Positions 103 through 42,155 of a stretch of DNA of 43,427 bases are shown piece by piece (the stretch's first letter is position 1; every line of letters starts with the position of its first letter). The notes beneath the pieces are model-generated. The model saw only the letters and a program-made list of their open reading frames with translations. It had not been told where the DNA came from and searched no databases. A program made the translations under genes and the position numbers. Origin of the DNA: Macrostomum lignano (Eukaryota); the NCBI GenBank assembly GCA_002269645.1, contig NIVC01003851.1, forward strand, positions 1 through 43,427, in the 5' to 3' direction.

Positions 103-3100
103 CTGAAAAAAAGAGTTTCAGATTGTCCGTCATAAATATATTAAAGCTGTTGTCTTTCTAGACACAAATGTATTTATTAAATACAATTTGTTTACAAGAA
201 ACACAAGCATGGTCTTAACAAATATTTAATACTGAAGAAAATACTGATAAATAAATAGCACATCCAATGAATACAGAATGAATCCAATGAATACAGATCC
301 ACAAGTTCATTCCTAAAAACGTCATTAAATTCTAATTTCCAAGAAACACGGATCCGTTAAGTTCATTTTCTAAGAATGAAATCAATTAATTCCATTTCAA
401 AAACAGAGATTAATAACTCATATCTAAGAAACGCTGATCAATAAATCGCATTTCTAAAGAAACGCAGATCAATAAATCGAAATGCAGATCAATAAATCGC
501 ATTTCTAAGAAACGCAGATCAATAAATCTCATTTCTAAGAAACGCTGATTAATAAATCTAATTTTTAAGGAACGCAGATTAATGAAATCATTTCTAAGAA
601 ACGCAGATCAATAAATATCATTTCTAAGAAACGCAGAAATAGATTAATAATCTAATTTTAAGAAACGCAGATCGATAAATCGCATTTCTAAGAAACGCAG
701 ATTAATAAATATAATTTCTAAGAAATGCAGATAAAAACTTATTTCTAAGAAACGCAGATCAATAAATCGCATTTCTAAGAAACGCAGATCGATAAATCTC
801 ATTTCTAAGAAACGCAGATGAATAAATCTCTTTTCTAAGAAACGCAGATCAATAAATCTCATTTCTAAGAAACGCAGATCAATAAATCTCATTTCTAAGA
901 AACGCAGATCAATAAATCTTATTTCTAGAAACGCAGATCTATAAATCTCATTTCTAAGAAACGCAGATCTATAAATCTCATTTCTAAGAAATGCAGATCA
1001 ATAATCGCATTTCTAAGAAACGCAAATCTATAAATCTCATTTCTAAGAAACGCAGATAGAAACGCAGATCAATAAATCTCATTTCTAAAAAATGCAGATC
1101 AATAAATCGCATTTCAAGAAACGCAGATCTATAAATCTCATTTCTAAGGAACGCAGATTAATAAATCTCTTTTCGAAGAAACAAAGAACTAAAACTCCCT
1201 AAAGTTCAAATTTTTGAATTTTTAAATTAAAAAAAACCAAAGGGAACTCACCCTAACCCGCTGCCGTTTAGTACCCGCTTTCACAGTGGCGGATGTCGTC
1301 GAGCAAGTCGAAGCTCTTGACGACAAACGCGGCGGCGGCGGGCGGCGGCAACTGGAGCTGCTCGATTTTATCCTGGAGCTTAGCGTTATCCAAATGAAGG
1401 CTGGCCACCTTAGCCATCTCGGCCTCCAACTCCCGTTGGGCCTTGGCTCGTTCGGCCAGCCTGTTATTCTCGGCCGCTTCAAGATTTCGCCGACTTTCAA
1501 GCCGGCGCTCTTCTAATTTGCGCCTATACGCGTCCTTCTCATCCTCCAGGTCGCGTTTGAGCACTTCTAAACGGCCCTGCAAGTCCGCTACGTTGCGTCT
1601 CGCAACCTCAGCTTCTGCCTCGGCAGCGGTTGCACGGTTCTCGACTATGAAGAGTGAGTTGGAGTTGTTGAGTCTTAATTATTGCGTCTAAGATTGAGGG
1701 GGGGGGGGTCGCCACACACACCCTCAATTACCTCCAGCGAATGCTGGCAACCCATTTTACAGCTGGGTGAACTGAAGCAATGCAGAGTTAAGCTGCTCAA
1801 GGACACAAATTGTTCCAAGTGGAATCGAACCCCGACCTTCAGGTCGTCAGTCCGACGCTCTAATCACTAGGCTACAAACCCCGGTGCCAGCAGCTTAGGC
1901 TCGATTTCAAGTGCAGTCACATTAATTTTTGGGCTTAAAATCGGAATCTCGGCTTGGCTCTGCTCGTGCAATTAACGCCCAGCTTGATGGCCAACCCTCA
2001 GGCACAAATCAAGGCTATGAAATGTACATAATAAGACTCACAGCCTGGATGAGCTGGCTAGTTTCTTTCGAACGTTGAGCTAACTGCTCTTTCAGCTCAT
2101 TAATCTGATTTTGTTTGGCTTGAATAGTATCTGTATCCGCTGATAGTTGCTCTTGGAGCTGTAATAAAATAATTTAGTTTTCGTATGTTTTTACTTACAG
2201 TAGACAAAATGCGAACTAGTCTACAAATTTAGTTGTGATTTTTTTATTTACCAACGTTATCCTTTCTTCAGAGTCCGTATTGTTCACGGAGAGGCGCTGC
2301 TTTAAATCAATCAGTAACTGATCTTTTTCAATAGATGCAACTGATTCAAGCTCCAGTTGTTGCTCCAGCTGTTGAGATCAAAGCATGGACTATTATAGAG
2401 CTTAGGAGAAACAGTACAAAAAATGCTTACTGGCTGTTTGTACAGGGATGGGACTAGCTGTTTGTACAAGGGTGGGACTAGCTGTTTGTACAGGGTTGGG
2501 ACTAGCCGTTTGTACAGGGGTGGGACTAGCTGTTTGTACAGGGATGGGACTAGCTGTTTGTACAGGGGTGGGACTAGCTGTTTGTACAGGGTTGGGACTA
2601 GCTGTTTGTACAGGGGTGGGACTAGCTGTTTGTACAGAGGTGAGACTAGCTGTGTGGTACAGAGGTGGGACTAGCTGTTTGTACAGGGATGGGACTAGCT
2701 GTGTGGTACAGAGGTGGGACTAGCTGTTTGTACAGGGATGGGACTAGCTGTTTGTACAGGGATGGGACTAGCTGTGTGGTACAGAGGTGGGACTAGCTGT
2801 TTGTACAGGGATGGGACTAGCTGTGTGGTACAGGGGTGGGACTAGCTGTGTGGTACAGGGGTGGGACTAGCTGTGTGATACAGGGGTGGGACTAGCTGTT
2901 TGTACAGGGTTGGGACTAGCTGTTTGTACAGGGGTGGGACTAGCTGTTTGTACAGAGGTGAGACTAGCTGTGGTACAGGGATGGGACTAGCTGTGTGGTA
3001 CAGGGGTGGGACTAGCTGTGTGGTACAGGGGTGGGACTAGCTGTGTGGTACAGGGGTGGGACTAGCTGTTTGTACAGGGATGGGACTAGCTGTGTGGTAC

Positions 3101-3859
3101 AGGGGTGGGACTAGCTGTGTGGTACAGGGGTGGGACTAGCTGTGTGGTACAGGGCTGGGACTAGCTGTGTGGTACAGGGCTGGACTAGCTGTGTGATACA
3201 GGGGTGGGACTAGCTGTGTGGTACAGGGGTGGGACTAGCTGTGTGGTACAGGGGTGGGACTAGCTGTGTGATACAGGGGTGGGACTAGCTGTGTGGTACA
3301 GGGGTGGGACTAGCTGTGTGGTACAGGGGTGGGACTAGCTGTGTGGTACAGGGGTGGGACTAGCTGTGTGGTACAGGGGTGGGACTAGCTGTGTGGTACA
3401 GGGGTGGGACTAGCTGTGTGGTACAGGGGTGGGACTACAGAGCACTCACCGAATGAATTTTCTCAGCATTTTCGGCTTCTTTGTTTGCAATTTGCTGCCG
3501 CAGTTCATTCAGCTCAGTTTCCTTTGCATCGAGCTTGACTTGCCCAGCAACTAGCTCATCTCGGAGCTAGAATTGTGGAAATATATGCGAATAAATTTAA
3601 TAAGTTTAACAAGTATAAATTAAACATGGGATTTCATTTCTGCTAAGAGCGAACCTGCAAAAATTACAAAAAAACATAAATTCTATAAACAGAAGATAGC
3701 GAGCGGAAACGAAATCATAAATCATTTTTCCGGAACAAGCATGTACAAGCCTACTAAGACAAGTTAAATGAAAGTCAGACAGAAAAGAAACTAGGATGGA
3801 CAGGCCAAAACAAAAATACAGTCATTTAAAAAAAATGTACTAAAACAGAAAAGGCCGAT

Positions 3860-3916
<57 letters not shown>

Positions 3917-6900
3917 AAGAAGACGAAGACGCTCGAGTTAGTTAATACGAGCTATTATCAGACTTTTTTGGGATAAGTTACCATATGTTCCCAGATGTGA
4001 CACACTGTTTCCCATATGTGACACCATGTTCCCATATCGGACACCCTGTTCCCATCTGACACCATGTTCCCATATCGGACACCCTGTTCCCATATGTGAC
4101 ACCCTGTTCCCATATCGGACACTCTGTTTCCCATCTGACACCCTGTTTCCCATCTGACACCCTGTTTCCCATCTAACACCGTTTCCCATCTGACACCCTG
4201 TTACCCATCTGACACCCTGTTTCCCATCTGACACCCCGTTTCCCATCTAACACCGTTTCCCATCTGACACCCTGTTTCCCATCTGACACCCTGTTTTTCA
4301 TCTGACACCCTGTTTCCCATCTGACACCCTGTTTCCCATCTGACACCCTGTTTTTCATCAGACACCCTGTTTCCCATCTGACACTTTGTTTAACATCTGA
4401 CACCCTGTCTCCCATCTGACACCCTGTTTAACATCTGACACCCTGTCTCCCATCTGACACCCTGTTCCGATATCTGACACCCTGTTCCGATATCTGACAC
4501 ACTGTTTCGCATCTGACACCCTGTTTCGCATCTGACACCCTGTTTCCCATCTGACACCCTGTTTCCCATCTGACACCCTGTTTCCATATCTGACACCCTG
4601 TTTAACATCTGACACCCTGTTTCCCATCTGACACCCTGTTCCCATATCTGACACCAGATCCTATATCTGACACCTTTTTTTATCTGACACCCTGTCTCCC
4701 ATCTGACACCCTGTCTCCCATCTGACACACTGTCTGCATATCTGACACCCTGTCTCCCATCTGACACCCCGTCTAAAGCTCATTTTCTTAAGCTCACCTG
4801 CTTAAGCTGATTCTCAGCTTCAGACTCAGCTTCATCCAGCCGACGCCGAAGCTCCAGCAGCTGCTCATCCTTTGCTGAGGACTCCGCCGAAATGGACTCC
4901 AACTTCGCTTCAGACTGGCGGAGCTTCTCAACCTTCAATGAAAAACAATAGGTTGATAAAAAATAAGAGACGAGTCCCAACTCCCACACGCTTGCTTACC
5001 GTCTCATTCAGTTCGATAGAGAGCTTATCACTGTCACGTGACTTTTCTGCCAATTGCGACTGGAGTTGGGCTAGCTGCTGATTTAGCTGAAATGAATGTT
5101 CAAAATGGCTCAATTATTTTACTGAGGCTAATAATATATTTGTAATACTTTAATAGCACTAATTTGCTAACCACTTCTATTCGCTTATCAAGTTTTCGTA
5201 TTTGGTAATTTTTCAGGTTTCTTGAAAATCCTCCTTTTTGGCAATTTTTCGGGTGTGTTGAAAATCCTTATATTTCGGCAAATTTTGGGGTCTGTTGAAA
5301 ATCCACCTATTTCGGCAATTTTTCGGGTTTGTTAAAATCCTCAGATTTGCAGCAATTTTTCGGGTTTGTTAAAATTCTCAGATTTGCAGCAATTTTTCGG
5401 GTTTGTTAAAATCCTCAGATTTGCAGCAATTTTTCGGGTTTGTTAAAATCCTCAGATTTGCAGCAATTTTTTGTGTTTGTTGAAAATCCTCAGAGTTCAG
5501 CAATTTTTCGGGTTTCTTGAAAATCCTAAGATTTCAGCAATTTTTCGGGTTTCCCGAAAATCCTCAGAGTTCAGCAATTTTTCAGGTTTGTTTAGGATAC
5601 TTACATTTCGGAAACTTTTCTGAATCGTTGAAAATCCTCATTGGTAATTTTCAGGTTTTTTTAATTTTTTAATATTTCATATGTCTCACCCTGTTTCCCA
5701 TCTGACACCATGATCCCACATCTGACACCCTGTTCCCATATCTGACACCTGATCCCACATCTGACACCCTGTTTCTCATCTGACACCCTGTTTCCCATCT
5801 GACACCCTGTTTTCATATCTGACACCAGATCCTATATCTGACACCCTGTACCCATATCTGACACCTGATCCAATATCAGACACCTGATCCCACATCTGAC
5901 ACCATGATCCCATATCTGACACCCTGTTCCCATATCTGACACCTGATCCCACATCTGACACCCTGTTCCCATATCTGACACCTGATCCCACATCTGACAC
6001 CCTGTTTCCCATCTGACACCATGATCCCACATCTGACACCCTGTTTCCCATCTGACACCATGATCCCACATCTGACACCCTGTTTCCCATCTGACACCAT
6101 GATCCCACATCTGACACCCTGTTTCCCATCTGACACCATGATCCCACATCTGACACCCTGTTTCCCATCTGACACCATGATCCCACATCTGACACCCTGT
6201 TTCCCATCTGACACCATGATCCCACATCTGACACCCTGTTTCCCATCTGACCCCATGATCCCACATCTGACACCCTGTTTCCCATCTGACACCATGATCC
6301 CACATCTGACACCCTGTTTTTCATCTGACACCATGATCCCACATCTGACACCCTGTTTCCCATCTGACACCATGATCCCACATCTGACACCCTGTTTCCC
6401 ATCTGACACCCTGTCTCCCATCTGACACCCTGTTTCCCATCTGACACCATGATCCCACATCTGACACCCTGTTTCCCATCTGACACCATGATCCCACATC
6501 TGACACCCTGTTTCCCATCTGACACCATGATCCCACATCTGACACCCTGTTTCCCATCTGACACCATGATCCCACATCTGACACCCTGTTTCCCATCTGA
6601 CACCATGATCCCACATCTGACACCCTGTTCCCATATCTGACACCTGATCCAATATCAGACACCTGATCCCACATCTGACACCTGATCCCACATCTGACAC
6701 CCTGTTCCCATATCTGACACCTGATCCCACATCTGACACCCTGTTTCTCATCTGACACCCTGTTTCCCATCTGACACCCTGTTCTTTTATCTGACACCCT
6801 GTTCCTTTATCTGACACCCTGTTTTCCATCTGACACCCTGTCTCCCATCTGACACCCTGTTTCCCATCTGACACCTGATCCCATATCTGACAGCCTGTTT

Positions 6901-9900
6901 CTCATCTGACACCCTGTTTCCCATCTGACACCCTGTTCCTTTATCTGACACCCTGTTCCTTTATCTGACACCCTGTTTCCCATCTGACACCCTGTTCCTT
7001 TATCTGACACCCTGTTTTCCATCTGACACCATGATCCCATATCTGACACCCTGTTCCCATATCTGACACCTGATCCCAAATCTGACACCCTGTTTCTCAT
7101 CTGACACCCTGTTTCCCATCTGACACCCTGTTCTTTTATCTGACACCCTGTTCCTTTATCTGACACCCTGTTTTCCATCTGACACCCTGTCTCCCATCTG
7201 ACACCCTGTTTCCCATCTGACACCTGATCCCATATCTGACAGCCTGTTTCTCATCTGACACCCTGTTTCCCATCTGACACCCTGTTCCTTTATCTGACAC
7301 CCTGTTTCCCATCTGACACCCTGTTCCTTTATCTGACACCCTGTTCCTTTATCTGACACCCTGTTTTCCATCTGACACCCTGTTTTCCATCTGACACCCT
7401 GTCTCCCATCTGACACCCTGTTTCCCATCTGACACCTGATCCCATATCTGACAGCCTGTTTCTCATCTGACACCCTGTTTCCCATCTGACACCCTGTTCC
7501 TTTATCTGACACCCTGTTTCCCATCTGACACCCTGTTCCTTTATCTGACACCCTGTTCCTTTATCTGACACCCTGTTTTCCATCTGACACCCTGTCTCCC
7601 ATCTGACACCCTGTTTCCCATCTGACACCTGATCCCATATCTGACAGCCTGTTCTCACATCTGACACCTGATCCCATATCTGACACCATGATCCCAAATC
7701 TGACACCTGATACCATATCTGACACCTGATCCTATATCTGACACCAGTTCCCATATCTGACACCCTGTTCCCATATCTGACACCTGATCCCACATCTGAC
7801 ACCCTGTTTAACATCTGACACCCTGTCTCCCATCTGACACCCTGTTTCCCATCTGACACCCTGTTTAACATCTGACACCCTGTTTAACATCTGACACCCT
7901 GTCTCCTATCTGACACCCTGTTCCCATATCTGACACCTGATCTTATATCTGACACCCTGTTCCTTTATCTGACACTCTGTTTTCCATCTGACACCCTGCC
8001 TAAAGCTCATTATCTTAAACTCACCTGCTTAAGCTGATCCTCAGCTTCCGACTCAGCTTCATCCAGCCGACGCTGAAGCTCCAGCAGCTGCTCATCCTTT
8101 GCTGAGGACTCCGCCGAAATGGACTCCAACTTCGCTTCAGACTGGCGGAGCTTCTCAACCTTCAATGAAAAACAATAAGTTGATAAAAAATAAGAGAAGA
8201 GCCCCAACTCCCACACGCTTGCTTACCGTCTCATTCAGTTCGATAGAGAGCTTATCACTGTCACGTGACTTTTCTGCCAATTGCGACTGGAGTTGGGCTA
8301 GCTGCTGATTTAGCTGAAATGAATGTTCAAAATTGCATCTGCATCTGACACCCTGTTCCCACATCTGACACCTGATCCTATATCTGACACCTGATCCCAT
8401 ATCTGACAGCCTGTTCCCACATCTGACACCTGATCCCATATCTGACACCATGATCCCAAATCTGACACCTGATACCATATCTGACACCTGATCCTATATC
8501 TGACACCTGATCCAATACCTGACACCATGATCCTATATCTGACACCTGATCCCATATCTGACACCCTGTTCCGATATCTGACACACTGTTTCGCATCTGA
8601 CACCCTGTTTCCCATCTGACACCCTGTTTAACATCTGACACCCTGTTTAACATCTGACACCCTGTTTAACATCTGGCACCCTGTTTAACATCAGACACCC
8701 TGTTTAACATCTGACACCCTGTTTAACATCTGACACCCTGTTCCCATATCTGACACCTGATCTTATATCTGACACCCTGTTTCCCATTTGACACCCTGTT
8801 CCCATATCTGACACCCTGTCTCCCATCTGACACCCTGTTTCCCATCTGACACCCTGTTTCCCATCTGACACCCTGTTTCCCATCTGACACCCTGTTCCCA
8901 TATCTGACACCAGATCCTATATCTGACACCTTTTTTATCTGACACCCTGTCTGCATATCTGACACACTGTCTCCCATCTGACACCCCGTCTAAAGCTCAT
9001 TTTCTTAAGCTCACCTGCTTAAGCTGATTCTCAGCTTCAGACTCAGCTTCATCCAGCCGACGCCGAAGCTCCAGCAGCTGCTCATCCTTTGCTGAGGACT
9101 CCGCCGAAATGGACTCCAACTTCGCTTCAGACTGGCGGAGCTTCTCAACCTTCAATGAAAAACAATAAGTTGATAAAAAATAAGAGACGAGTCCCAACTC
9201 CCACACGCTTGCTTACCGTCTCATTCAGTTCGATAGAGAGCTTATCACTGTCACGTGACTTTTCTGCCAATTGCGACTGGAGTTGGGCTAGCTGCTGATT
9301 TAGCTGAAATGAATGTTCAAAATTGCATCTGACACCCTGTTTTCCATCTGACACCCTGTTCCCATATTTGACACCAGATCCTATATCTGACACCTTTTTT
9401 TATCTGACACCCTGTCTCCCATCTGACACACTGTCTGAATATCTGACACCCTGTTTTCCATCTGACACCCTGTTTTCCATCTGACACCCTGCCTAAAGCT
9501 AATTTTCTTCAACTCACCTGCTTAAGCTGATTCTCAGCTTCCGACTCAGCTTCATCCAGCCGTCGCTGAAGCTCCAGCAGCTGCTCATCCTTTGCTGAGG
9601 ACTCCGCCGAAATGGACTCCAACTTCGCTTCAGACTGGCGGAGCTTCTCAACCTTCAATGAAAAACAATAAGTTGATAAAAAATAAGAGAAGAGCCCCAA
9701 CTCCCACACGCTTGCTTACCGTCTCATTCAGTTCGATAGAGAGCTTATCACTGTCACGTGACTTTTCTGCCAATTGCGACTGGAGTTGGGCTAGCTGCTG
9801 ATTTAGCTGAAATGAATGTTCAAAATTGCATCTGCATCTGACACCCTGTTCCCACATCTGACACCTGATCCTATATCTGACACCTGATCCCATATCTGAC

Positions 9901-12900
9901 AGCCTGTTCCCACATCTGACACCTGATCCCATATCTGACACCATGATCCCAAATCTGACACCTGATACCATATCTGACACCTGATCCAATACCTGACACC
10001 ATGATCCTATATCTGACACCTGATCCCATATCTGACACCCTGTTCCGATATCTGACACACTGTTTCGCATCTGACACCCTGTTTCCCATCTGACACCCTG
10101 TTTAACATCTGACACCCTGTTTAACATCTGACACCCTGTTTAACATCTGACACCCTGTTTAACATCTGACACCCTGTTTAACATCTGACACCCTGTCTCC
10201 CTTCTGACACCCTGTTTAACATCTGACACCCTGTTTAACATCTGACACCCTGTTTAACATCTGACACCCTGTTTAACATCTGACACCCTGTTTAACATCT
10301 GACACCCTGTCTCCCATCTGACACCCTGTTCCCATATCTGACACCTGATCTTATATCTGACACCCTGTTTCCTATTTGACACCCTGTTCCCATATCTGAC
10401 ACCCTGTCTCCCATCTGACACCCTGTCTAAAGCTCATTTTCTTAAACTCACCTGCTTAAGCTGATTCTCAGCTTCCGACTCAGCTTCATCCAGCCGACGC
10501 TGAAGCTCCAGCAGCTGCTCATCCTTTGCTGAGGACTCCGCCGAAATGGACTCCAACTTCGCTTCAGACTGGCGGAGCTTCTCAACCTTCAATGAAAAAC
10601 AATAAGTTGATAAAAAATAAGAGAAGAGCCCCAACTCCCACACGCTTGCTCACCGTCTCATTCAGTTCGATAGAGAGCTTATCACTGTCACGTGACTTTT
10701 CTGCCAATTGCGACTGGAGTTGGGCTAGCTGCTGATTTAGCTGAAATGAATGTTCAAAATGGCTCAATTATTTTACTGAGGCTAATAATATATTTGTAAT
10801 ACTTCAATAGCACTAATTTGCTAACCACTTCTATTCGCTTATCAAGTTTTCGTATTTGGCAATTTGTCGGTTCTGTTGAAAATCCTTAAATTTTCGGCTA
10901 ATTTTCGGGTTTTTTGAAAATCCTTATATTTCAGCAATTTTCAGGTTTGCTAAAAATATCAACTAATGGGTGTTGCCTAGAGTTTCTGTATATAAATCAT
11001 TTTATTGATCAGTAATTGAAAAAATGAGCTCACTAAATCTGATGATTTGCTAGAGGCATCAACTCCGCTCTGAGAAGATTCCAGCTGGTCTTTCAGCTCC
11101 AGCAGCTGTTGATTGAGCTGAAGCAGGCGTTCAGAGACGAAAAAGCATTTTACTTGAGCCTAATGTTAGTAATGAAAGTTAAGCATCTGGGAGGCTGGTG
11201 GCCCAGCAACTGGGGATCTGGGAGGCTGGTGGCCCAGCAACTGGGGATCTGGGAGGCTGGCCCAGCAACTGAGGATCTGGGAGGCTAGTGGCCCAGCAAC
11301 TGGGGATCTGGGAGGCTGGTGGCCCAGCAACTGGGGATCTGGGAGGCTGGTGGCCCAGCAACTGGGGATCTGGGAGGCTGGCCCAGCAACTGAGGATCTG
11401 GGAGGCTGATGGCCCAGCAACTGAGGATCTGGGAGGCTGTTGGCCCAGCAACTGGGGATCTGGGAGGCTGGTGGCCCAGCAACTGGGGATCTGGGAGGCT
11501 GTTGGCCCAGCAATTGAGGATCTGGGAGGCTGGTGGCCCTGCAACTGGGGATCTGGGAGGCTGGCCCAGCAACTGAGGATCTGGGAGGCTGGTGGCCCAG
11601 CAACTGGGGATCTGGGAGGCTGGTGGCCCAGCAACTGGGGATCTGGGAGGCTGTTGGCCCAGCAATTGAGGATCTGGGAGGCTGGTGGCCCTGCAACTGA
11701 GGATCTGGGAGGCTGGTAGCCCAGCAATTGAGGATCTGGGAGGCTGTTGGCCCAGCAATTGAGGATCTGGGAGGCTGGTAGCCCAGCAACTGAGGATCTG
11801 GGAGGCTGGTAGCCCAGCAATTGAGGATCTGGGAGGCTGTTGGCCCAGCAATTGAGGATCTGGGAGGCTGGCCCAGCAACTGAGGATCTGGGAGGCTGGC
11901 CCAGCAACTGAGGATCTGGGAGGCTGGCCCAGCAACTGAGGATCTGGGAGGCTGTTGGCCCAGCAACTGAGGATCTGGGAGGCTGGTGGTCCAGCAACTG
12001 AGGATCTGGGAGGCTGGTGGCCCAGCAACTGAGGATCTGGGAGGCTGGCCCAGCAACTGAGGATCTGGGAGGCTGGTGGTCCAGCAACTGGGGATCTGGG
12101 AGGCTGGCAGCAGCCAAAGCCCTATAATACTGCCATAAGTAGTATATCGTTAGTATAAGTATCATACCTGCTGCAACTGGGCCTCAGCCTGCGAGCTAAT
12201 TCGTAGAACTTGCTCATTCATCTCTTCTAGTTTGGCGTCCTTAGCCTTGGAATCGGCCATTTCTTCGCGGAGTTTCTGGACGAGCTGGCAAATGATTAAA
12301 GAATAGAAATTTGAAACGGAGATTCTTCAAAGAAGAAAGCGTATTCTTCTTTAACAAACTATTGCTTATTGGACTAGATCACCCTTTCTACATCTCTTCC
12401 ACGAGTCTTAATTATGTATTAAGCATTTAGCTACGGTATCTACCCAATTCTATCTCCCAGCCACTGAGCACTTCTCATGAACATCGTCAATGCATAAGAA
12501 TATTAATACGAAAACCAAATATCTAAGCAACACGGTAGTGATCACTCACGCATTCAACTCTTTCCTCTAGATCAACATCAGCCTTAGCAGCCTCTTTCAA
12601 ATGCTCGTTAGCCATTTGGCAGCAGCTTTGATCGGATTCAATGTTCTTAGCAGTATAAGCTTCATTGTCTATGGCATCGGCAGATTTAGCAGCGGGCTCT
12701 GATCCTTGTTCGGCATGCCCGAGGGCTTCGATGCGACTCCTTAACTGGCTGATGGTTTCCGCCTGGGTGCAAGTGGTGCATTTTCAGAGAGAGTCATTCA
12801 TATGCTTTGACTGTTCCTCGTGTCTACCTTCTCCTCCTCTCCCATCTCCGCTCTCCCCTCTACCATCTCCTATCTCCCTTCTCCCATCTCATATCTCCCT

Positions 12901-15900
12901 TCTCCTATCTCCCTTCTCCCCTCTCCTATCTCCCTTCTCTCCTCTCCTATCTTCCTTCTCCCATCTCATATCTCCCTTCGCCCCAAACCGCTCTCGCATT
13001 TCCCTTCTATATCCCCCGTATCGACTCTCTCCTCTCCTATCTCCCTATCTGGTCTCTGCATCTGTGTATCTACCATCTAATCTCACACTCAATCTCCAAT
13101 TCAACTCTATTCTCAAGCCAGTTCCCCTCACCTGCTCCTCAACAGTCAGCCGTGCAGTCTTCAACTCCTCAGCCAGCAATTCTCGCTCCATCCTGAGTCC
13201 ATCCAGCATCTCCTGTGAGCAGGCCAGCGTGGCAGTCATGGCGCCTACCTGTCGCTCTCGGTTCTCCTGCTCTTCAACCAGTTCAGCCTCCAGCTCGTGA
13301 ACCAGAAACGAGTCGTTCTTAAGCAGAGTGGCCCGCATTGCAGACCGGTGCTGATTGGTGGGCGGAGGCGGGTGCGACCTGGCCAGGCTGCTGATATCTG
13401 CAGACTCCGCTAGCCGCCTGTGCATATCGCCGATTCTCCTGACTCGAATGTTTACTTCGGCTTCGATGGCCTCTTTAGTGGAGACGCTCTGAGCAGCGGC
13501 CAGCTCCATCTCCAATTTCTCAACTTTATTATTCAAATTTTCCAACTGCTCATCTTGCTGCTCAGCCTCCGACCTGGCCTCGCCAAGTTGCTCTTCTAAT
13601 CTATCGATTTTTGCTTGCAGTTCGGCCAGCTTGCGTTTGTGAGCCTCAACCATGCGCTTCTTCAGGTTGTCGCTGATCCGCTGGGAAGTGTCCAGGTACT
13701 CGCGCAGGCGGGTGTCGTGGCGCTCCTGCAAGGGTCAATGGGGAATGGTTTAGTAGTTATAAATCAATGTCAGAGGCAAATTTTAAGAATTCAATCGCTA
13801 GACTCTAGGAAAAGGAATAGAAATGGCAGATTTTAACCACGAAATGGCAGATTTAACTACAAAATGGCAGATTTAACTACAAAATGGCAGATTTAACTAC
13901 AAAATGGCAGATTTTGAATCTACAAAATGGCAGATTTAACTACAAAATGGCAGATTTTGAATCTACAAAATGGCAGATTTAACTACAAAATGGCAGATTT
14001 TGAATCTACAAAATGGCAGATTTTGAATCTACAAAATGGCAGATTTTGAATCTACAAAATGGCAGATTTAACTACAAAATGGCAGATTTAACTACAAAAT
14101 GGCAGATTTTAGCTACAAAAATGGCAGATTCTGAATCTACAAAATGGCAGATTCTGAATCTACAAAATGGCAGATACTGAAACTACAAAACGGCAGATTC
14201 TGAAACTACAAAATGGCAGATTCTGAAACTACAAAATGGCAGATTCTGAAACTACAAAATGGCAGATTCTGAAACTACAAAATGGCAGATTCTGAAACTA
14301 CAAAATGGCAGATTCTGAAACTACAAAATGGCAGATTCTGAAACTACAAAATGGCAGATTCTGAAACTACAAAATGGCAGATTCTGAAACTACAAAATGG
14401 CAGATTCTGAAACTACAAAATGGCAGATTCTGAATCTACAAAATGGCAGATACTGAAACTACAAAATGGCAGATTCTGAAACTACAAAATGGCAGATTCT
14501 GAAACTACAAAATGGCAGATTTTGAAACTACAAAATAATTGAAGAATCTTGGAATAGCATTGCTCAGTTATATCACAACGTACCTCTTGCAGCTCCTTCT
14601 GCTCCTGAAGCTGCTGCTCAAATCGCTCCTCCACCTCGCTCATCAGCCGGTCCCGTTCGGCAATGAGCTCGCGTCTAATGCGCATCTCCCGCTCCTCCAT
14701 CTCCTCCTCTTGCTGCTGCACAGTTTGGCGCAGGTCTCCAATGAGCTTCAGCATCTCCTGCAGTAGTTTTAGGATTGGATTATCGTTTAATTTAGATATT
14801 GAAGTCACTAGATCTATTTATTGAAGCCTCTACATTAATCCAGCTATCTAGACGAGAAATCGATAGTTTATCTAGCCGGTTTTTTGAAAACAGATAGAAA
14901 TGCTTCAGGTCTCACTCTTAGATCTCAGAAATCACCCTTCGATACCCTTCAGGCCTCACCGTTAGATATCTTTCAGGCCTCACCCTTGGATATCCTTCAG
15001 GTCTCACTCTTAGATATCCTTCAGCCCTACTCTTAAATTCATCCGCACTACACTATTGAAAAGAGCATCATTTAAAGGAGTGCAAACCCACACCTCAAGC
15101 ACTGCAACTCGCTCATTCCTTACCTCCTTACTACACTGGGCAATGTCGGCCATTTCGAATTCATTCGCATCAACGTAGGTCACTTCGTACTGCTGCTCAT
15201 CCTCGCCATCGGAGTCTTCTTGATGGTCGCCGATCTCGTCTACTATTGGCTCAATTGGCTCAATTGGCTTAATCTCCTCCTGTTCATCTTTCTTAGCAAC
15301 CGTCGTCATAGCAGCCGCAGTAACAACTGTAGCTGTCATAGTTTTAGTCTGATAGACTGGCACAATAATAGTAGAATTATTATGACTGCTACTCTTAGCA
15401 GTAGCTGTAGTAACCGTAGTAGAAGTCTTATTACTATTAGTAGTAGTAGTAGCCGTAACCTTCCTAATTCCAATGCCGGGAGAGGCGGCATTCGGAGCGG
15501 CCAAGTGAAGCCGGTGCGGGGTCGGCGCCGTCACGGTGATGTTGCTGGCTAGCGCGCTGAATCTCAATACGTTTAAAGTGTCATCAAACAGACTGGCGCA
15601 CCTGCTGATATTCACAATCATAGTGGCCCTGCCGCTGCCGCTGAAGTACGGCTGTATCAACTGGGTGAGTTTGGACTCGCGGAACGGCACCAGCCTGGCT
15701 GATTTCGGATTCTGCTGATTGTGCTGAAGTGTTTCAATGCACCTGCGCAGAGTCAGCAGGCTGCTGTTGATGCTGCAGGCCTCGCGAGCGCGGTCGTTTG
15801 CGCCGATGTTGGCGCCGTATCGGGCTGTGCGCTGGCTCTCTGAACCGGCCAGGTCGCAGAATGTTAAACTGGACACCTGTTGTTTCCAATGCGTGTTTAT

Positions 15901-18900
15901 GCTGGGCTGTATAATAAACTCTCCGGAATATCTTCATCGGAATTCCCCAGATAAATACAAATTCAGAATCCTACTTACTGACTGAATTCCCCAGACTCTC
16001 TATGTGAATTCTCCAGACTCTCTATGTGAATTCCCCAGACTCTCTATGTGAATTCCCCAGACTCTCTATGTGAATTCCCCAGACTCTCTATGTGAATTCC
16101 CCAGACTCTCTATGTGAATTCCCCAGACTCTCTATCTGAATTCCCCAGACTCTCTAACTGAATTCCCCAGACTCTCTAACTGAATTCCCCAGACTCTCTA
16201 TCTGAATTCCCCAGACTCTCTAACTGAATTCCCCAGACTCTCTAACTGAATTCCCCAGACTCTATCTGAATTCCCCAGACTCTCTATCTGAATTCCCCAG
16301 ACTCTCTATCTGAATTCCCCAGATTCTCTATCTGAATTCCTCAGACTCTCCATATGAATTACCCATGCTCCCTATCTGAATTCCCCAGACTCCCTATCAG
16401 AATTCCCAAGACTCTTTATCTGAATTCCCAAGACCCTCTATCTGAATTCCGCAGACTATCTGAATTCCCTAGACTATCTGAATTCCCTAGTAGACTATCT
16501 GAATTGCACAACATCTCTATCTGAATTCCCCAGACTATCTGAAATCCCCAGACTCTCTACCTGAATTCCCTCGAAAAATGAATCTGAATTCTCTAGAATC
16601 CATCTAAATTCCCCCAAAATCCATCTGAATTCCCTAGACTCTCTATCTGAATTCCCCAGAGCCCCTTACCAATCCAAAATTAGGCGCCTCCTTATCCAAG
16701 CAGGTGACCAGGCGAACAGCGAACAGCGAGTGACTCCTGGAGGACTGCTGATTCAGAACGGTAGCGGCCACGCTCTGGTTCTGTTTGCCCAGCAACACGA
16801 GCCTGCAGGCGTCCTGAGCGCTGCACACAGGCAGGCAGCGCAGGCCTTTGATATAAAATTTGCCTGTCTTGTCCCAACGAACATCCAGAGCAGTCCGGCT
16901 CGGCTTCCGGCCGCGTTGAACAATCGGCTCCAGCAGGTCGTACACGACTTCGTTGTAGATCTCGGCGTACGAAACCCAGACGCAGAAGCGCTTCTGCGAT
17001 GACGGAACTGACGAAGCATCGCCAATCACTTCGCTGTCTGATTCGCAGGTTGTCGAAGAATCGACAGCAGCGTCCGATGACAGGCGGGAATCGAAAATCA
17101 CTGAATCGCGGGAATTGTTGCACCTGCAGTGGTTTTGCGATGGGGATGCGAGAAAGGATTTATATAAGTTGGCTAGGAATTCGATTTAAGATTATTCAGA
17201 TGGGAGATTTTCCCTGAAAATGGGATATTCTTCAGGAGATGGGAGATTTTAATTAAGAATGGGATTTTTTCAAATGAGAGATTTTTCCCTAAAAACGGGA
17301 TTTTTTCAGAAGATGGGAAATTTTCCCGTAAAATGGGAGATTCTTCAGAATATGGGACATTTTTCCTTTAAAATGGGATATTTTTCAGAAGATGGGAGAT
17401 TTTTTCCCTGAAAATGGGATATTATTTTGAAGATGAGATTTTTCCCTGAAAATGGGATTATTTTCAGAAGACAGGAGATTTTTCCCTAAAAACGGGCGTT
17501 TTTTAAAGATGTAATTTTCCCTAAAATGGGATGTTCTTAAAATGGGAGATTTTCCCTGAAAATGGGATATTCCTAAAATGGGAGATTTTTTCCAAAAAAT
17601 GGGACATTCTTTAAATGGGAGATTTTATTCGAAAATGGGATTTTCATCAGGATATTGGAGACTTTTCCCGAAAAATGGGAAACTCGTTACAATATAGGAG
17701 ATTTTCTGGTAAAAATAGGATATGATGGGAGATTTTTCCCTAAAAATGGGATCCTCTTCAGAAGATAGCAGATTTTTCTCTGAAATTGGGAGATTCTTCA
17801 GAGGAGCTTCTTTCCCTATTGAAAGGGAAATTCAATAGTTGTAATTAATAAACTGCTGCAAGTATACCAACTACAAATAGAAACAACCTACCAGGCGGTT
17901 GCCACAGCCTCTCCAGCCTCATAGGACTGCAGTAGGGCTTTGGTTTTCTTAAACGCAGCTTCAGCATCTCCTCTGGACAGCTGGACAGCTTGGCTAAAAC
18001 TGTCCGGACGGAATAAACAGCCAGGCTGAGCAGGCGTTGACAACAGGCGGTCGCCAATGTTGTCGAACAGAGATTTCAGGGCGCGCGGCAGAATGCCGGG
18101 TTGGTCGCCGCTGCCCTGCAAAAATGATACGATTAATTTTCTGATTACGCGCTCTGATGTGCCCCGATGAAAATGGTACCTGTGCCAAAAAGCATCCCAG
18201 AGTCACTTGCGTCGCCTTGTTGTAGGTAGGTAATACAGGTAAAATGTAAAAATAAGTGACCCAAGACTCTGAAACGACCCGGGGCGATTCTACAAATATA
18301 TCGACTCTGGAGCAAAATATTAGTATCTGAGGAAGTATCTCCCCTCTCTCCTATCTACCTCTCTCTTATCTACCTCTCTTCTATCTACCTCTCTCCTATC
18401 TACCTCTGTCCTATCTACCTCTATCTACCTCTCTTCTATCTATCTATCTATCTATTACGTCTACTTATCTACGTCTACTACTCTATTTCTCTCCTATCTA
18501 CCTCTCTTAAGGGGGCCGTAGCCCAGCGGTAGCGCAGCTGCTCTGGTGTGCCAGCGGCCCAGGCTCGATTCCAAGTGCAGTCGCATTAATTTGGGGCTGA
18601 ATTGGAATCTCGACTTGGCTCTGCTCGTGCAATTAACGGCCTTGAGAGCCAACCCCCAAGGCGCAGTGAAGTGTACATGCCTAACGATAAAATAAAGTTA
18701 GGGCCGCTGTACACTCCTGTGTGAGTGTGTGCCTGTGCGTATGACTGCTCAGGGGAGTCAGGCGCCAGGATAACCACAGCCCCTGGCCTCTACATTATAG
18801 TATTTATAGCTTCAAAATCCAGCGATGTGAATAGGAGGATTGAAAGCCAGTCCAACTCACTTGAATAGTATGAGTCTTGCCAGCGCTTGTGACACCATAG

Positions 18901-20198: not shown

Positions 20199-21506
20199 CG
20201 AGGGCTGAGCAATAAGTTTCCGGATGTTGCCCAGACAGAAATAGTTAGAGAGAAAAAAACAGTTACATCTTTTCAAAGTACTCTCCAGCAGATTCGATGC
20301 AAATTTTCATGCGCTCAAACCACTTGCTGAAGCAGCTGGACCAATCTGAAGCAGGCACCTCCACCGCATGCCGGATGAAGGCCTCCACTGCAGCTTCTGG
20401 TGATCCATAGCGGATTCCACGCATCCTGCGCTTGATTTGTGGAAACACAAAAAAGTCGCAGGGGGCCAGGTCGGGGCTGTAGGGTGGATGACCGAGCTTT
20501 TGAATGCGCTCTCCGGCCAGAAACTCCGCCATCTGTCATGCCTTGTGGGCCGGGGCGTTGTTGTGATGGAGAAGGATGCCCCGAGCTCGAGTCCTTGGGC
20601 GACGCCTGGAGAGAGCGCTCAGCACTTCTGGCAGGCAAACATTGGCATACCAGTCACCGGTGACTGTGCCCTGCTGCACGAGTGGAACCGTGGCCAGATG
20701 ACCGGTTTTCGCCACAAAAACGGCCACCATCTGCTTCGCCACGCTGCGCTCTCGCCGAAGCTTGGATGGTGGGGTGCCGCCAACTGGAGTCCACTGGGCC
20801 GACTGCTGCTTAGTCTCCGGGTCGAAACTATAGATACAGGACTCGTCACCACTGACAATATCCCAGACCGAGTTTGAGCTGCCTCCGTTGAATCTGTCGA
20901 GCATGGTGCGGCACCAGGTCACCCGAGCCTCCTTCTGCTCCGGAGTCAGCTGATGAGGCATCCAGCGTGCAGAAATCTTGCTCCGGTTGAGCTGCGAATG
21001 CAGGATCGTCCTGATGGATCCTGATGAGATGCCCATCTCTGCCTCTATCTGGGCCACAGTCACTCGGGCATCATCCTCAACCATGGCCCGGACAGCAGCA
21101 ACATTATCCTCGGTCGTCGCGGAGACCGGCCGGCCACTGCGCTCCTCATCATCCAGACTCTGCCTGCCGCGTCGAAATTCGGCAAACCAGTCAAAAACGG
21201 TGGATCTAGATAGTGCTTCATCCCCAAAAGCTCCTTGCAATCGCTCAACTTTCTTGCTGCCGCAAACCACTTTTATAATCGTAATAAATCATTGCTCTAA
21301 AATGACTCCTATTGAGCTCCATTGTGAATTTGATAGATAGGGTGGGTATGCTAGCTTGGTTTGGGTGCTGCACTGGCTATATATGACCAGTGTGTCTGAA
21401 ACTTTACAAACATTGTACTTATATAATGTACTTGACACCTATGGTGTCAGATTTTGTCAGCCGCCTCTCAACTATGCACATCCAGAAACTTATTGCTCAG
21501 CCCTCA
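20199..21506 (-). mobile_element. Full-length decayed mariner (DD34D) transposon, 1,308 bp
   Basis: ~28-bp terminal inverted repeats (TIRs) (C/T)GAGGGCTGAGCAATAAGTTTC flanked by TA at both ends. Transposase has WMPHQL, IVSGDES and YSPDLAPCD, with 34 residues between catalytic positions 2 and 3. Confidence 0.95.
20263..21322 (-). pseudogene. Mariner transposase, inactivated
   Basis: ATG at 21322 (MELNRSHFRAMIYYDYKSGL), frameshift near 21250, second catalytic D changed to N (HHNN), in-frame TGA at 20536-20538. Confidence 0.9.
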
Positions 21507-26709: not shown

Positions 26710-28450
26710 ATGAAATTCTCGGTCATTTTTGCGATTGTGCTTATTCGAGCGAGCGGTGAGTAGCTCTACACTCTACTCAACATGCCTCGTCACTCATGTC
26801 ATGCATTGCACGTTTAATCCTAAGTGCGTACATGCATACATCAATGTGAACTGCTGTTACAGCACTCTTACATGTTCTTTTGAATTGCAGTGACCAACGC
26901 AGCAGATGGCAAACGCTTCAATCGATTCGTCACCAGCGGCTCCGTTGAGCTGAGTGACTCTGTGAGCAGCTGGTTGTTCATCGAGACCGAAGTCGCTCGG
27001 GAAAGCCATTGCCTGCTGCTGTGCCAGCTCCGAGGCTGCGCTGTCGCCGAGCTGAACCAGACGGCCAGAGTCTGTCGGGCAGTCAGCCTCAGCAATGAGT
27101 CATCGGGGCAGCCCGCCGGCCTAAACGGAAGTCACGTGACGAGACAGCTCGGCTCGCCCGACGACAGCGCTGTGAATTTTTGGAAAGCGGAAGAATTTGA
27201 ACAATACCTGATGAGTTTGACGTCGGCTGGAGACTTGCTTAGAAGTGAGTCATGAGATGTGAAATTTCAAAAAAAGTTTGTAAAAATCGTTACACACAAA
27301 GCTTCATCAGTTACAATGGACACTGCATGACCCCTGCAGACAGCAGCTCCGGCCGAAACGGGTCGATCGAAACCTTCACGGCTCCCGCTAGCGGCTGCTT
27401 CCTGATCGAGGCTGCCGGAGCCAGAGGGGGCAACAACACTCTAATGAACACCACCGGAGGCCCGGGAGCCCAGGTGAGCGCCAGAGTCAACCTGACGGCC
27501 GGAACCCAGCTGAGCATCGTGGTGGGCCAGACGGGCGGCTCGACCTCCCTGGACTACGAAGGAGGCGGCGGAGGCGGCGGCAGCTTCGTGTACCGGACGG
27601 GCGACCGGCTGCTGCTGCTGGCTGCTGGTGGGGCGGCGGAGCTTCCAGGAGTAAAAATGGAGAGATGACACGCTTGCAGCTAACGATAACAGCAAGTGCA
27701 ATGGTACCTGCATTCGGTGGCGTCAATACGGCAATAGTTAGTACGCCACAACTGTAAATTCTTAGCAGATAGCCAGTATGTTTACTAAACACACTGAGTA
27801 GTAGGTATTGATTTCCGTTTGATGCCGTTTAGAGCCAATAATGGAAACCATCTTTTTTTAACAAAAAGCATCCGGTAAGCAACAAAAAGAGGCAACCGCA
27901 TACTCTTGAGACATCTAAGCTTGCTTAAATTATTTTGGAACTCTGCGCAGGACGGCCGGGAGAGGTCGGCGTCAACGCTTCCGACAGCATGGGATCTGGC
28001 TATTCCAATACGGGATTCGGTGGCAGCAACGGACAGCCGGGCTCCAACGATCCAAGCAGCACTTCCAGCTACACCAACCACGGCGGCTGCGGCGCCGGCT
28101 GGCTTGGCAGGGCCGTCAACCCGAGGCGCAGCTCCAATGATGGCGAGCGAGGCAGCGGTCTGGCCGAAGGCTTCGTCGGCGGCAGCGCCGGTGGTGGCAG
28201 CGCCTGCGACGGCGGCTTCGGCGGAGGCGGCGGAGGCGGCTGCAAGTGCGGCGGCAAATACGGAGCTCCGGGAGCTGGCGGCGGCTTCAGCGGCGGCGGA
28301 GCCGGGATCGGCTACGGGCACAGAGGCGGCGGCGGCGGCTCCTTCTGCCTGGGCGGCTGCGTCTCCGGAACCGTCTCGACTGTCGATCAGGGCTTCGCGT
28401 CTATCCAGTTGGAGTCCGTGTCCGTGTTGGAGTTATTCATTTATTTGTAG
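26710..28450 (+). CDS. Secreted PAN/apple-like plus ALK/LTK-type glycine-rich-domain protein, frameshifted as assembled
   Basis: Exons 26710-26755 (signal-like MKFSVIFAIVLIRAS), 26891-27244 (CLLLC...C...C PAN-like), 27340-~27659 and 27951-28450. Domain motifs FTAPASGCFLIEAAGARGG, LSIVVGQTGG, GGGGGGGSFVY, LLLLAAGG, GGGGGSF. Introns are phase 1. Confidence 0.75.
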
Positions 28451-30848: not shown

Positions 30849-31711
30849 CTAGCATGAAATGGCAGATGTCCTCGGGGTACACCAGACCATCATCACCGAT
30901 CACCTGCGCCAGCTGGGTAAGGTGTACAAGTTGGCATAATGGGTACCCCACGACCTTACCGAGTTCGACCGTCGGCGTTGCGCTGATGCTGCCATCCATA
31001 GTGACGGGTGACGAAAAGTGTTGTTTATACACCAACGTGAAACGCCGTGCTTTGTGGGTGGACGAAAATGAAGTGCCAAAACCACAGCCGAAAGCACCAC
31101 TGCACCCTTGATGATTTGGCAGCAAAGATCAAAGAAAAGCGCCCGAATCATGGTCCGGTCCGTTTTCTTCACGACAATGCGCGGCCGCACACGGCAAAGG
31201 CTGCTTGATCTGGGCTGGGAGGTTTTACCCCACCCACCTTATTCACCGGACCTTGCACCATCTGATTACCACTTGTTCCTATCCCTGTCCAGCGCCATGG
31301 CCGAGAAATCGTTTGATGAAGAGCATGAACTCAACGTCTGGCTGGACAACTTCTTCGCCTCAAAACCAGCTAAGTTCTATAAGGACGGCATCATGAGTCT
31401 GCCCAAACGACGGCAGAAAGGCCTCGAATATGATGGCGATTACTTCACTTTGTGAAGTTGCTTCAGTTCTATAAAAACTCAGTACGATTTAAGTTCTTAA
31501 AATCGGCAAGAAATTTACCCTTCAAACGAATAGCAAGGCACAATTTATGAACTATTTCGGCTAATCGCCGCAAGTCGTTAAGTAAAATCCTATTCGTAAA
31601 AAACTGACTTTAGTATTACTGATCGCACCAATGGGTATTGCTCTATGAAAGTATGAAATTGCTGCTAAACTGCTGGAGGCATTGCTAAATGCTGTGCTGT
31701 GCGAAGTTGCT

Positions 31712-31922
31712 GCTTCGTCGGCTTCGTCGAAGGCTTCGGCGGAGCGGCGGAGGCGGCTGCAAATTCGGCAGCAAAAATGGAGCTCCAGGCGTAGGGGTCG
31801 GCTACGGGCACATCGGCGGCGGCGGCGGCGGCGGCTCCTTCTGCTTGGGCGGCTGCGTCTCAAGAACCGTCTCGACTGTCGACCAGGGCTTCGCGTCCAT
31901 CCGGCTGGAGTCGGTGTCTTGA
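31712..31922 (+). pseudogene. Partial, deleted copy of the glycine-rich gene 3' end
   Basis: GGGGCKFG...GYGHIGGGGGGGSFCLGGCVSRTVSTVDQGFASIRLESVS matches about 28165-28420. Confidence 0.9.
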
Positions 31923-39534: not shown

Positions 39535-39648
39535 TCCTGAAGGGACTCCTGAAGGGACTCCTGAAGGGACTCCTAAAGGGACTCCTGAAGGGACTCCTGA
39601 AGGGACTCCTAAAGGGACTCCTGAAGGGACTCCTGAAGGGACTCTTGA
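39535..39648. repeat. 12-bp tandem repeat CTGAAGGGACTC
   Basis: About 9 near-perfect units. Confidence 0.9.
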
Positions 39649-40465
39649 AAGGCAACTTGTTATGGACTGCTCCTCAATGAATGAAGTGACAGCAACAATG
39701 ACAATATCAATTAAAGCTATAAGGAAGATTCATTTAGGAATTAATAATTCCAAATATGTTTTTTTCGAAGCTAGCACTAAATGAAGCTCTTTGCAAATCA
39801 TTGAGATCTATATCGTCTTGTTGCTTGCGCATGAGGGAGTATTGTCATGTTAGTGCAATTGAATCTAGAAAAAAATGTACAAATTTTTTGACAATAAGGG
39901 CTGAGTGCAAGATGCAAGGGTGCAAGAAACTTACTTTTGTAATGAAAGAAAAACCCCTATTGCAAGATGCTGGGAGTGGCACGTCATCGGACAAGGTCTC
40001 TTTGACCATTCGAAAGCCAAATCATCAACTTTTAGAAGAATAACAGAGGATGAGGAAGAAAATTTCACAAAACTTGTTGCAGAGGAAATTTTCTTTGCCA
40101 TTTTGAAAGTCATGTCTTACTTTCTTCTAGCAGTTGTTCAACAACTTTGCTGTCTCGATGACTTGTGACAATCTGATCAGGTATAGTTGACACTCTAGAT
40201 GGGTGTGGAATCTCAAAAAGTTACATTTACTTGTGATTTCTTTTAGGGCTGTTTTTGTTGCTTCCTTGTGTTGCTTTTTTGCTACATTTAAATTATCCAA
40301 CATTTCTTACATTTTCTCTCAATAATCTTAACTTAATAATAATAGTAGTAGTACAGTATATAATCATAGTAATATTAATAATAATAACAGTACAGTAATG
40401 TTAATAGTAATAACATTATTATAAGTAGTGCAAATATTATTAAAAAGTAATATTAATAATAATAG

Positions 40466-40950: not shown

Positions 40951-42155
40951 CATTAACTGTGATGGTCTCAGTGTGGTAGACCAATCAAAATAATATACAG
41001 CAAGTCTAAAAAATACAAGTGTAAATAGTTGTTGATGTAGGGTAAGACTTGGATAGAAAAACAAGACCTTCATTAATTATAGTGTTTTGTATTTCACCAT
41101 TTTAATCTTTAACATATTTTAGCCCCTTTTGACCTAGCTTTTTTGTTTTATTAGTTTATTGGTTTATTTTTATTTTTTAATTATCTTTCTTTTTATTTGC
41201 ATTTTGCCTTAATTAATTTGTTTTGCTTATTGGCTTATTTAGGTCCTATTGTCAGGAAGGTGTCAAGTGTTTTTAGGTGAAAGAGTTTTTTAGGCAAAGG
41301 TTTTGGTGTATGCCAAGTATGCTAAGACTCTCCAACCCCTAATTATAAAGTTTTAACCTTTTAATCTTGACATTGTTTGCTCAATTTTGTTCAACTCTAT
41401 ATGGATTTACAAACTACAATACACTAAAAGACTTGAACCCAATTCTTAAATTCCAATCCCAATCCTGAGAAAAAAATTATTCCTGATCCCAATCCCACCC
41501 AATGATTTCAGTCAATTCTGTCCAACCTCTAATATACTGTTTAAAAATATATGTTTTGAAAAGAATAAATTAACAAAAAAGCTCACAGAATGAAAATTTT
41601 AGATATAAAAGTTACAATTGTTCAAATAAAGGGTTGCATGTTGATACATTGAACAAACTTTTGAGTGCAGTGAAGCTCCTAGCCTGCAGTTTTGTTTTAC
41701 CTTCTTGTTCAGATTAAGGATTTTGGATGCAGTTGAAATTAAGTAACCATCTTTGCTGGTTACTGGCACCCTCTATCCTTATTGCTTGTTAAATGCAGTT
41801 GATTTGCCATAGCCTCTGTTTCTAGTATGTTTATTTTTGCTATTAAGTCTCAGATTTCTAGATTTGATCAGATTGCAAAAACCAATATTAAGTTCTATAT
41901 TGTGTGTTATTTATATTATTTCTTTCATTTGAAGTAATTTGATGTTTTTAGCAATAGCAATAAAGGGTAAAGTACTTAGCAACCCAGGGCACTAGCAATT
42001 CCTATTCATGCCCTCCAAGGCTCCAATCCAGGAGTAGAGATATTGATATTTTATTGAATTTTAGGCATAGGTCTAAAAGTGCAGATTATAATTTTTTTAT
42101 GGCTAAAAGTAAAGCCTATTACAATAATCAATGGAGTTTAATACCACAACATTGC

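Follow-up and report, generated by a model that had tools for sequence, protein, structure and literature searches.

The window analysed here is the whole of contig NIVC01003851.1 (43,427 nt) of the Macrostomum lignano assembly GCA_002269645.1 (Mlig_3_7). Its minus strand carries an annotated kinesin-6 gene, BOX15_Mlig000035g5 (1588-24720), encoding the 1255-residue protein PAA49536.1 (termed P0008), which was placed exon by exon on the window by protein-to-window mapping. Within the part of the gene that encodes the distal coiled-coil stalk, between positions 4798 and 10740, a cassette of two coiled-coil exons occurs five times, with minisatellite DNA between the copies. An initial annotation of the window had interpreted this array as a potentially length-tunable kinesin-6 stalk.

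The motor domain supports the family assignment. Three exon open reading frames (ORFs) match the Pfam Kinesin domain PF00225 (E 6e-17 to 2e-28), with the match split around a loop-6 insert, and motor residues 66-525 (460 residues) are collinear with residues 7-463 of KIF20A, long loop-6 insert included (E 2.4e-86, 294 bits). The second-best structure, 5x3e (E 2.4e-51), is deposited as 'Kinesin-like protein' and is presumably the Caenorhabditis elegans kinesin-6 ZEN-4. Other kinesin families match the motor at 1e-40 or weaker, in a comparison that covered solved structures only and included no phylogeny. Judged by its predicted motor, the gene is a KIF20A/MKLP2-like kinesin-6, and the alignment over the whole motor bears out the label given in the initial annotation.

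Five copies of a two-exon stalk cassette

The cassette consists of an 87-nt exon (exon 1), a 67-nt GT-AG intron and a 135-nt exon (exon 2), and is present in five direct copies on the minus strand, named c1 to c5 in gene direction. Copy c1 spans 10452-10740 (exon 1 10740-10654, intron 10653-10587, exon 2 10586-10452) and c2 spans 9518-9806 (9806-9720, 9719-9653 and 9652-9518, in the same order). They are followed by c3 at 9015-9303 (9303-9217, 9216-9150, 9149-9015), c4 at 8025-8313 (8313-8227, 8226-8160, 8159-8025) and c5 at 4798-5086 (5086-5000, 4999-4933, 4932-4798). All five copies have the acceptor CATTCATTTCAG, an intron of the form GT(A/G)AGC...TTGAAG and the donor GTGAG, and contain no stop codon. 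Each cassette contributes 87 + 135 = 222 coding nt, equivalent to 29 + 45 = 74 residues, and is in phase 0 at both ends. Exon 1 encodes the peptide LNQQLAQLQSQLAEKSRDSDKLSIELNET and exon 2 encodes VEKLRQSEAKLESISAESSAKDEQLLEL[Q/R]RRLDEAESEAE[N/D]QLKQ.

Among the copies, 1-6 of the 289 positions differ and identity over 300 nt is 96-100% (repeat family D11), a length and a likeness that rule out chance resemblance. At the peptide level the five cassettes are distinguished by at most two conservative residues, the Q/R and N/D positions. Copies c1, c2 and c4 belong to type A, with c1 reading LQRR and ENQ and c4 carrying the EDQ variant, while c3 and c5 belong to type B (LRRR), giving the order A A B A B in gene direction. 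The five phase-0 cassettes with intact GT-AG sites and no stops that had been described initially were recovered with limits matching to the base, and the variants proposed as diagnostic of individual copies, LRRR in c3 and c5 and EDQ in c4, were confirmed.

With the exon boundary marked by a slash, the junction of exon 2 with exon 1 is ...CTTAAGCAG/CTAAATCAGC..., and the further junctions are ...TCATCAGATTTA/CTAAATCAGCAG... for the preceding exon exB with exon 1, ...CAGCTTAAGCAG/CTAAATCAGCAG... for exon 2 with exon 1, and ...CAGCTTAAGCAG/CTCCGAGATGAG... for exon 2 with the following exon, exP. A junction of exon 2 with exon 2, ...CAGCTTAAGCAG/GTTGAGAAGCTC..., is diagnostic for the paralogous gene described below. 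Complete-exon units lie head to tail with frame and splice sites kept in all copies, as in an exon-containing tandem duplication. As assembled, the array shows the recent expansion of one two-exon module (29 + 45 residues) to five tandem copies.

Minisatellite spacers and the origin of the array

The minisatellite that accompanies the cassettes has a unit of 19-20 bp, reading TGACACCCTGTTTCCCATC on the plus strand. A tandem-repeat scan located blocks of it at 9835-10430 (between c1 and c2) and at 9326-9491 (between c2 and c3). Further blocks lie at 8342-8986 (between c3 and c4) and at 5687-7998 (between c4 and c5; approximately 119 units with a 39-bp dimer periodicity), and a 19-bp block at 3998-4769 occupies the intron between c5 and exP. 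These intronic arrays are 0.2-2.3 kb in size, and in the two contigs examined the 19-20-bp repeat is confined to the cassette region.

The initial annotation had a single 19-20-bp satellite separating the copies. Blocks of it are indeed found in all spacers, but the spacer between c4 and c5 also contains a 37-bp minisatellite and approximately 108 nt of unique sequence. This additional segment (5099-5640, with the 37-bp array of 11.8 units at 5207-5640) is the flank preceding c5 and is of native type; the corresponding flank of c1 (10741-10960) has unique sequence and 2.7 units of a 37-38-bp minisatellite (10859-10957). Because the c4-c5 spacer carries a duplicate of the c1 upstream flank, both c1 and c5 have their native upstream intron and count as complete units; the satellite directly adjoins c2-c4 only. 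Alignment of the copies showed that the satellite reaches to approximately 20-22 nt before the acceptor in c2-c4, in agreement with the breakpoint of about 20 nt noted at first.

The spacers differ in length (214-2938 nt) and content. The two spacers c1-c2 and c3-c4 can be aligned collinearly (91.6% over 604 nt). The c2-c3 spacer has its counterpart in the 192 nt that directly follow c5 (90%), and the sequence upstream of c1 has its counterpart in the final part of the c4-c5 spacer (90% over 219 nt). If the assembled order is right, these mosaic spacers together with the A A B A B order of cassette types mean that several rounds of exchange took place, not one event. The array most likely arose through illegitimate exchange inside intronic minisatellite arrays, followed by unequal homologous exchange inside such arrays that gave the five tandem copies. 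The earlier proposal that satellite-driven exchange is amplifying the module is supported by the mosaic spacers and by an independent amplification of exon 2 in a paralogous contig.

A paralogous gene with a different array

The paralogous contig NIVC01002757.1 (locus L001) encodes the protein P0001 (PAA55420.1), which is 95% identical over the matched stretch. Here exB is followed by one complete cassette and then by at least 12 units, each of which consists only of exon 2 and the final 63 nt of the intron before it. The exon-2 copies, at least 13 in all (a lower bound, with the array still running at the end of the fetched DNA, which included a 10-kb flank), are all identical, have undamaged AG and GT sites, and recur with a higher-order period of 3759 bp. 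The units are separated by the same 19-bp repeat and 37-bp-type repeats as the window array. In L001 the breakpoint joins a 37-bp repeat to position +5 of the cassette intron, whereas in the window it lies between the 19-bp repeat and position -20 of the acceptor of exon 1. Judged from the two contigs, breakpoints as different as these show that amplification of one and the same stalk module occurred independently in each gene copy. Comparison of the window with the paralogue gives identities of 95.4% and 98.5% for the cassette exons and of 89% for the neighbouring non-repeat intron; this higher identity of exons than of intron is consistent with the module being coding sequence.

Other gene models intersect the arrays in several ways. 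P0004, a UniProt model from the older ML2 assembly, contains three successive exon-2 copies reading LQRR, LQRR and LRRR, which is the order of c1, c2 and c3; the support that it lends is limited because ML2 and Mlig_3_7 share raw reads. P0009 and P0004 skip exon 1, and P0002 and P0003 are truncated. P0001 itself leaves exon 1 one base out of register (LDE/RLRSSASLK...) and stops inside the first exon 2 (L001 21700-21871), a frameshift that the annotation introduced where the exon-2 array begins.

Nearly every intron of the kinesin gene has a minisatellite of its own. Across window positions 400-18500 the intronic arrays have units of approximately 30, 25, 19, 37, 31, 21, 23, 24, 22, 40 and 15 bp. 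Of these, the 19-, 23-, 24-, 31- and 40-bp arrays are also present in the matching introns of the paralogue (L001 13200-21030), as, probably, is the 22-bp array. Arrays common to corresponding introns of both gene copies are older than the split of those copies. Since nearly every intron holds a minisatellite and the same repeats are found in the introns of the paralogue, the cassette array is one product of a tendency that this gene and genome show generally. The M. lignano genome contains 15% simple and tandem repeats (PMC5730564) and is that of a recent polyploid, in which the three subgenome copies differ by approximately 2% substitutions and mostly by indels (PMC10733133).

Flanking exons and predicted stalk structure

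Upstream of the array lie exA (12168-12284, 117 nt) and exB (11034-11117, 84 nt, LNQQLLELKDQLESSQSGVDASSKSSDL). Downstream of it lie exP (3450-3566, 117 nt), the first exon after the array, and exQ and exR (2368-2252 and 2158-2042, each 117 nt; together 2042-2368). All are on the minus strand, in phase 0 and within the annotated mRNA, and exA, exP, exQ and exR are each exactly 117 nt long. ExA is an older, diverged paralogue of exon 2 (z 5.5, p 0.001) and exB of exon 1 (z 3.7, p 0.003), while exR is a paralogue of exP (z 8.1). The paralogy of exA, exB and the exP/exR pair, combined with their membership of the annotated mRNA, indicates that the stalk had already grown by exon duplication before the present array formed.

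The annotated protein stops 18 residues past exR, ending in SRTVQPLPRQKLRLRDAT before the stop codon (window 1591-1660). A long coiled-coil ORF (ENRATAAEAEAE..., extending to 1271) runs on in another frame, and the ML2-based model P0009 follows it, reading SENRATAAE. The likely cause is a 1-nt indel in the contig near 1645, at the acceptor of the next exon, exS (CATAG/TCGAG), or else use of the next AG. If this reading holds, the protein probably extends about 110 residues beyond its annotated end.

The initial annotation had described the cassette as coiled coil. In a single-sequence AlphaFold2 prediction, one unbroken helix runs through three cassettes and their junctions (residues 60-326, mean predicted local distance difference test score 82), and the chain breaks solely in the Ser/Gly-rich part of exB, in keeping with that description. 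A heptad-register model places one stutter in each 74-residue cassette (74 = 10 x 7 + 4) and finds the register continuous across the exB-exon 1, exon 2-exon 1 and exon 2-exP junctions. Fourier analysis of hydrophobic periodicity returned a weak, uninformative signal, and the inference about the stalk rests on the register model and AlphaFold2 rather than on periodicity. In these models, added cassettes would be structurally harmless, and four extra cassettes would add at most 4 x 74 residues (approximately 44 nm) to an unbroken alpha-helical stalk and leave the downstream heptad register undisturbed. The value of approximately 11 nm per cassette at 0.15 nm per residue agrees with the earlier calculation. 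A protein search with the stalk exons hit M. lignano proteins only, and neither this search nor a HMMER scan of 1.84 billion representatives detected stalk relatives outside the species.

Cassettes in the annotated and the mature mRNA

The transcript-guided model of this contig, P0008, reads ...SSKSSDL/LNQQLAQ...NET/VEKLRQ...LQRR...ENQLKQ/LRDELVAG..., where slashes mark exon boundaries. Short reads and a de novo assembly underlie the annotation from which it comes, whose pipeline discarded transcripts that overlapped annotated repeats (PMC5730564). The LQRR and ENQ residues of P0008 are the majority consensus expected from a collapsed assembly of all five copies.

All copies share acceptor, donor, internal intron and frame, and c5 matches c1 in its exons, internal intron, upstream flank and downstream flank; comparison of the two copies offers no visible reason why c1 would be spliced in and c5 skipped. 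On this basis we infer that a mature mRNA carrying more than the single annotated cassette is somewhat favoured. Inclusion of c2-c4 is less certain than that of c5, because only approximately 20 nt of native intron precede them.

Other features of the window

An inverted partial duplicate of the kinesin gene relates 12823-15756 to 31926-33989, with non-repeat arms that are 97-99% complementary. It contains the end of the last motor exon, two stalk exons and their intronic minisatellites, with stalk-exon frames open at 32425-32757 (+) and 33050-33766 (+), and could be either a gene fragment or a misjoined paralogue. A remnant of a Mariner/Mos1-type transposase lies at 20539-21288 (-), matching the Pfam families HTH_48, HTH_32 and Transposase_1; the region 31072-31452 (+) has no Pfam match, yet looks like the C-terminus of a transposase of this type. 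Glycine-rich protein ORFs at 27249-28447 (+) match the ALK/LTK glycine-rich domain PF12810 (E 1.5e-7), and a diverged partial copy is found 3.5 kb downstream at 31689-31919 (82% over 131 nt). An LSM-domain ORF at 41964-42368 (+; PF01423, E 1e-11) probably belongs to a gene for an Sm-like small nuclear ribonucleoprotein protein. At 39535-39649 the 12-bp unit TCCTGAAGGGAC is repeated 9.6 times with 95% matches and is open in several frames (PEGT or LKGL repeats); it may be coding or simply another minisatellite.

Discussion

Taken together, we consider it likely, with good confidence in the explanation as a whole, that a stalk module of this kinesin-6 gene underwent repeat-driven amplification and that its mRNA, somewhat more probably than not, carries more than one cassette, with no sign of regulated tuning of stalk length. 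Most simply, the amplification would be a mutational by-product of a very repeat-rich neopolyploid genome and not a regulated device.

Several observations weigh against this reading. P0008 has exactly one cassette, and the initial annotation had itself stated that transcripts containing only ever one cassette would speak against its proposal; at face value P0008 fits that description, but a collapsed short-read assembly would look identical. A protein-database search with two cassettes and their flanking exons, and the exhaustive HMMER scan of 1.84 billion representatives, for which exon 2-exon 1-exon 2-exP served as the query, returned only M. lignano gene models and no two-cassette protein that was transcript-derived or from another species. 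With only approximately 20 nt of native upstream intron kept, the branch points of c2-c4 may be lost. Among the five copies, 4 of 222 exon sites and 4 of 67 intron sites are variable (Fisher p 0.087), and two of the exonic changes are non-synonymous; the copies, as assembled, are too young to show selection and their differences too few to read constraint. Finally, noisy long reads underlie the Mlig_3_7 assembly, and 36% of its scaffolds have been judged chimeric, with many paralogues misrepresented (PMC10733133). Given these properties and the probable 1-nt indel near 1645, the exact copy numbers are provisional and need confirmation.

The same observations bear on the alternatives. One cassette might be spliced while the other four are unused pseudo-exons, awaiting decay in a 6.9-kb repeat-filled intron. 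The single cassette of P0008 fits this view, as do the truncated native intron of c2-c4, copies so young that intact frames are uninformative, and a transcript model of the paralogue that ends inside its first exon 2. We nevertheless regard silent duplicates as a doubtful explanation, since the flanks of c5 equal those of c1 (108 nt of unique sequence and a 37-bp array upstream, and the same sequence downstream), the LQRR and ENQ of P0008 are what a collapsed short-read assembly would give, the short-read pipeline dropped transcripts overlapping repeats (PMC5730564), and older duplicates of these very exons became mRNA exons. It is very unlikely that the array or its copy number was made or inflated by misassembly of noisy PacBio reads. 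The chimeric scaffolds, the probable indel at the exS acceptor and the suspiciously identical 13 exon-2 copies and 3759-bp repeats of L001 could all be taken in that sense; however, the window copies have distinct substitutions and spacers of varied length (214-2938 nt), the ML2-based model gives the same A, A, B order, a second contig has an array of different structure, and the 6-kb region fits inside single long reads. A hairpin or chimeric-read origin of the array was ruled out by its direct repeats with distinct variants and spacers.

Two further explanations grant the cassettes a use. In a length-tunable motor, cassette number would vary by allele, by individual or through regulated skipping, and the variation would be used or selected. 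Phase-0 exons would keep the frame, and the heptad register and helix would stay continuous, for any cassette number; moreover, the two gene copies differ widely (5 x 74 against at least 13 x 45 residues) after amplifying the module twice independently. However, a mutational hotspot equally predicts recurrent amplification, with the same repeats flanking the module in both gene copies, the near-identical copies carry no readable signal of selection, and the one transcript-based model has a single cassette. We therefore consider this interpretation improbable, and nothing in the evidence presented here points to a regulated or adaptive tuning of length. Alternatively, exactly one of the five cassettes could be chosen per transcript to yield protein variants. 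The annotated model does have one cassette, and tandem duplicated exon substitution is a known mechanism (PMC9741552), but the near-same peptide encoded by all five copies (Q/R, N/D) means that such a choice would give no meaningful diversity. Mutually exclusive use was rejected because the divergence needed for distinct variants is absent among the five cassettes, and we give it almost no credence.

Repeat-driven amplification of a stalk module, as preferred here, would have several consequences. If the extra cassettes are expressed, kinesin-6 stalks would be up to approximately 44 nm longer than annotated and would differ greatly in length between the two gene copies, and nature would have provided a ready-made experiment on coiled-coil length in a cytokinesis motor, in an animal that offers transgenesis and abundant dividing stem cells. 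A more speculative and rather unlikely extension is very fast evolution of stalk length in an essential cytokinesis motor through repeat-mediated gain and loss of modules, with the two gene copies expressing coiled coils that differ by hundreds of residues and with differences between lines or individuals. Were this true, it would supply a natural series relating stalk length to kinesin-6 function at the central spindle. The arrays also carry a warning for annotation, since it is precisely at the array that the deposited protein models for the two gene copies break off, shift frame or are collapsed. Intronic minisatellites driving exon amplification twice at one module suggest how coiled-coil stalks built of symmetric exons can grow.

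Comparison with known systems

The present protein resembles the cytokinesis kinesin-6 motors KIF20A (MKLP2) and KIF20B (MPP1): its motor, loop-6 insert included, aligns over its full length with that of KIF20A, and a long, predicted coiled-coil stalk follows. The stalk of KIF20B is unusually long. No account of a recent exon-cassette amplification in any kinesin-6 stalk is known to us, although the literature was not searched for one. A literature search for the two gene identifiers found no papers.

Outside the kinesins, related arrangements have been described. Like the window array, tandem duplicated exon substitution arises by tandem exon duplication within a gene (PMC9741552), but its exon pairs are ancient, diverged and used singly, whereas the present copies are 98-100% identical and probably additive. 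[quoted passage not shown] In it, as here, the tandem unit is two whole exons plus an intron, the frame is preserved, and the units are near-identical and unresolvable by short reads; copy number there sets protein length, with a 5.6-kb unit giving more than 40 isoform sizes (PMC6314250). All LPA copies are known to be expressed and to vary in number, two properties that the window array may share, and their unit is a folded kringle domain with ordinary intron spacers, as opposed to a coiled coil with minisatellite spacers. The butyrophilin-like BG genes of the chicken offer the nearest parallel among coiled coils, in that coiled-coil length depends on how many small repeated exons a gene has. 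Their cytoplasmic tails are built of 21-nt heptad exons, with 27-37 exons varying by gene and haplotype (PMC5938342). A BG exon encodes one heptad and starts with a split codon, however, whereas the present exons encode 29 and 45 residues in phase 0 with a built-in stutter, and BG is a multigene immune family rather than a motor protein. To regard the window array as an undescribed system is not justified, because frame-preserving tandem duplication of exon cassettes is already known from LPA KIV-2 and chicken BG. The kind of system is thus a known one, and what is new is its occurrence in the stalk of a kinesin-6, where two paralogues have each undergone amplification on their own.

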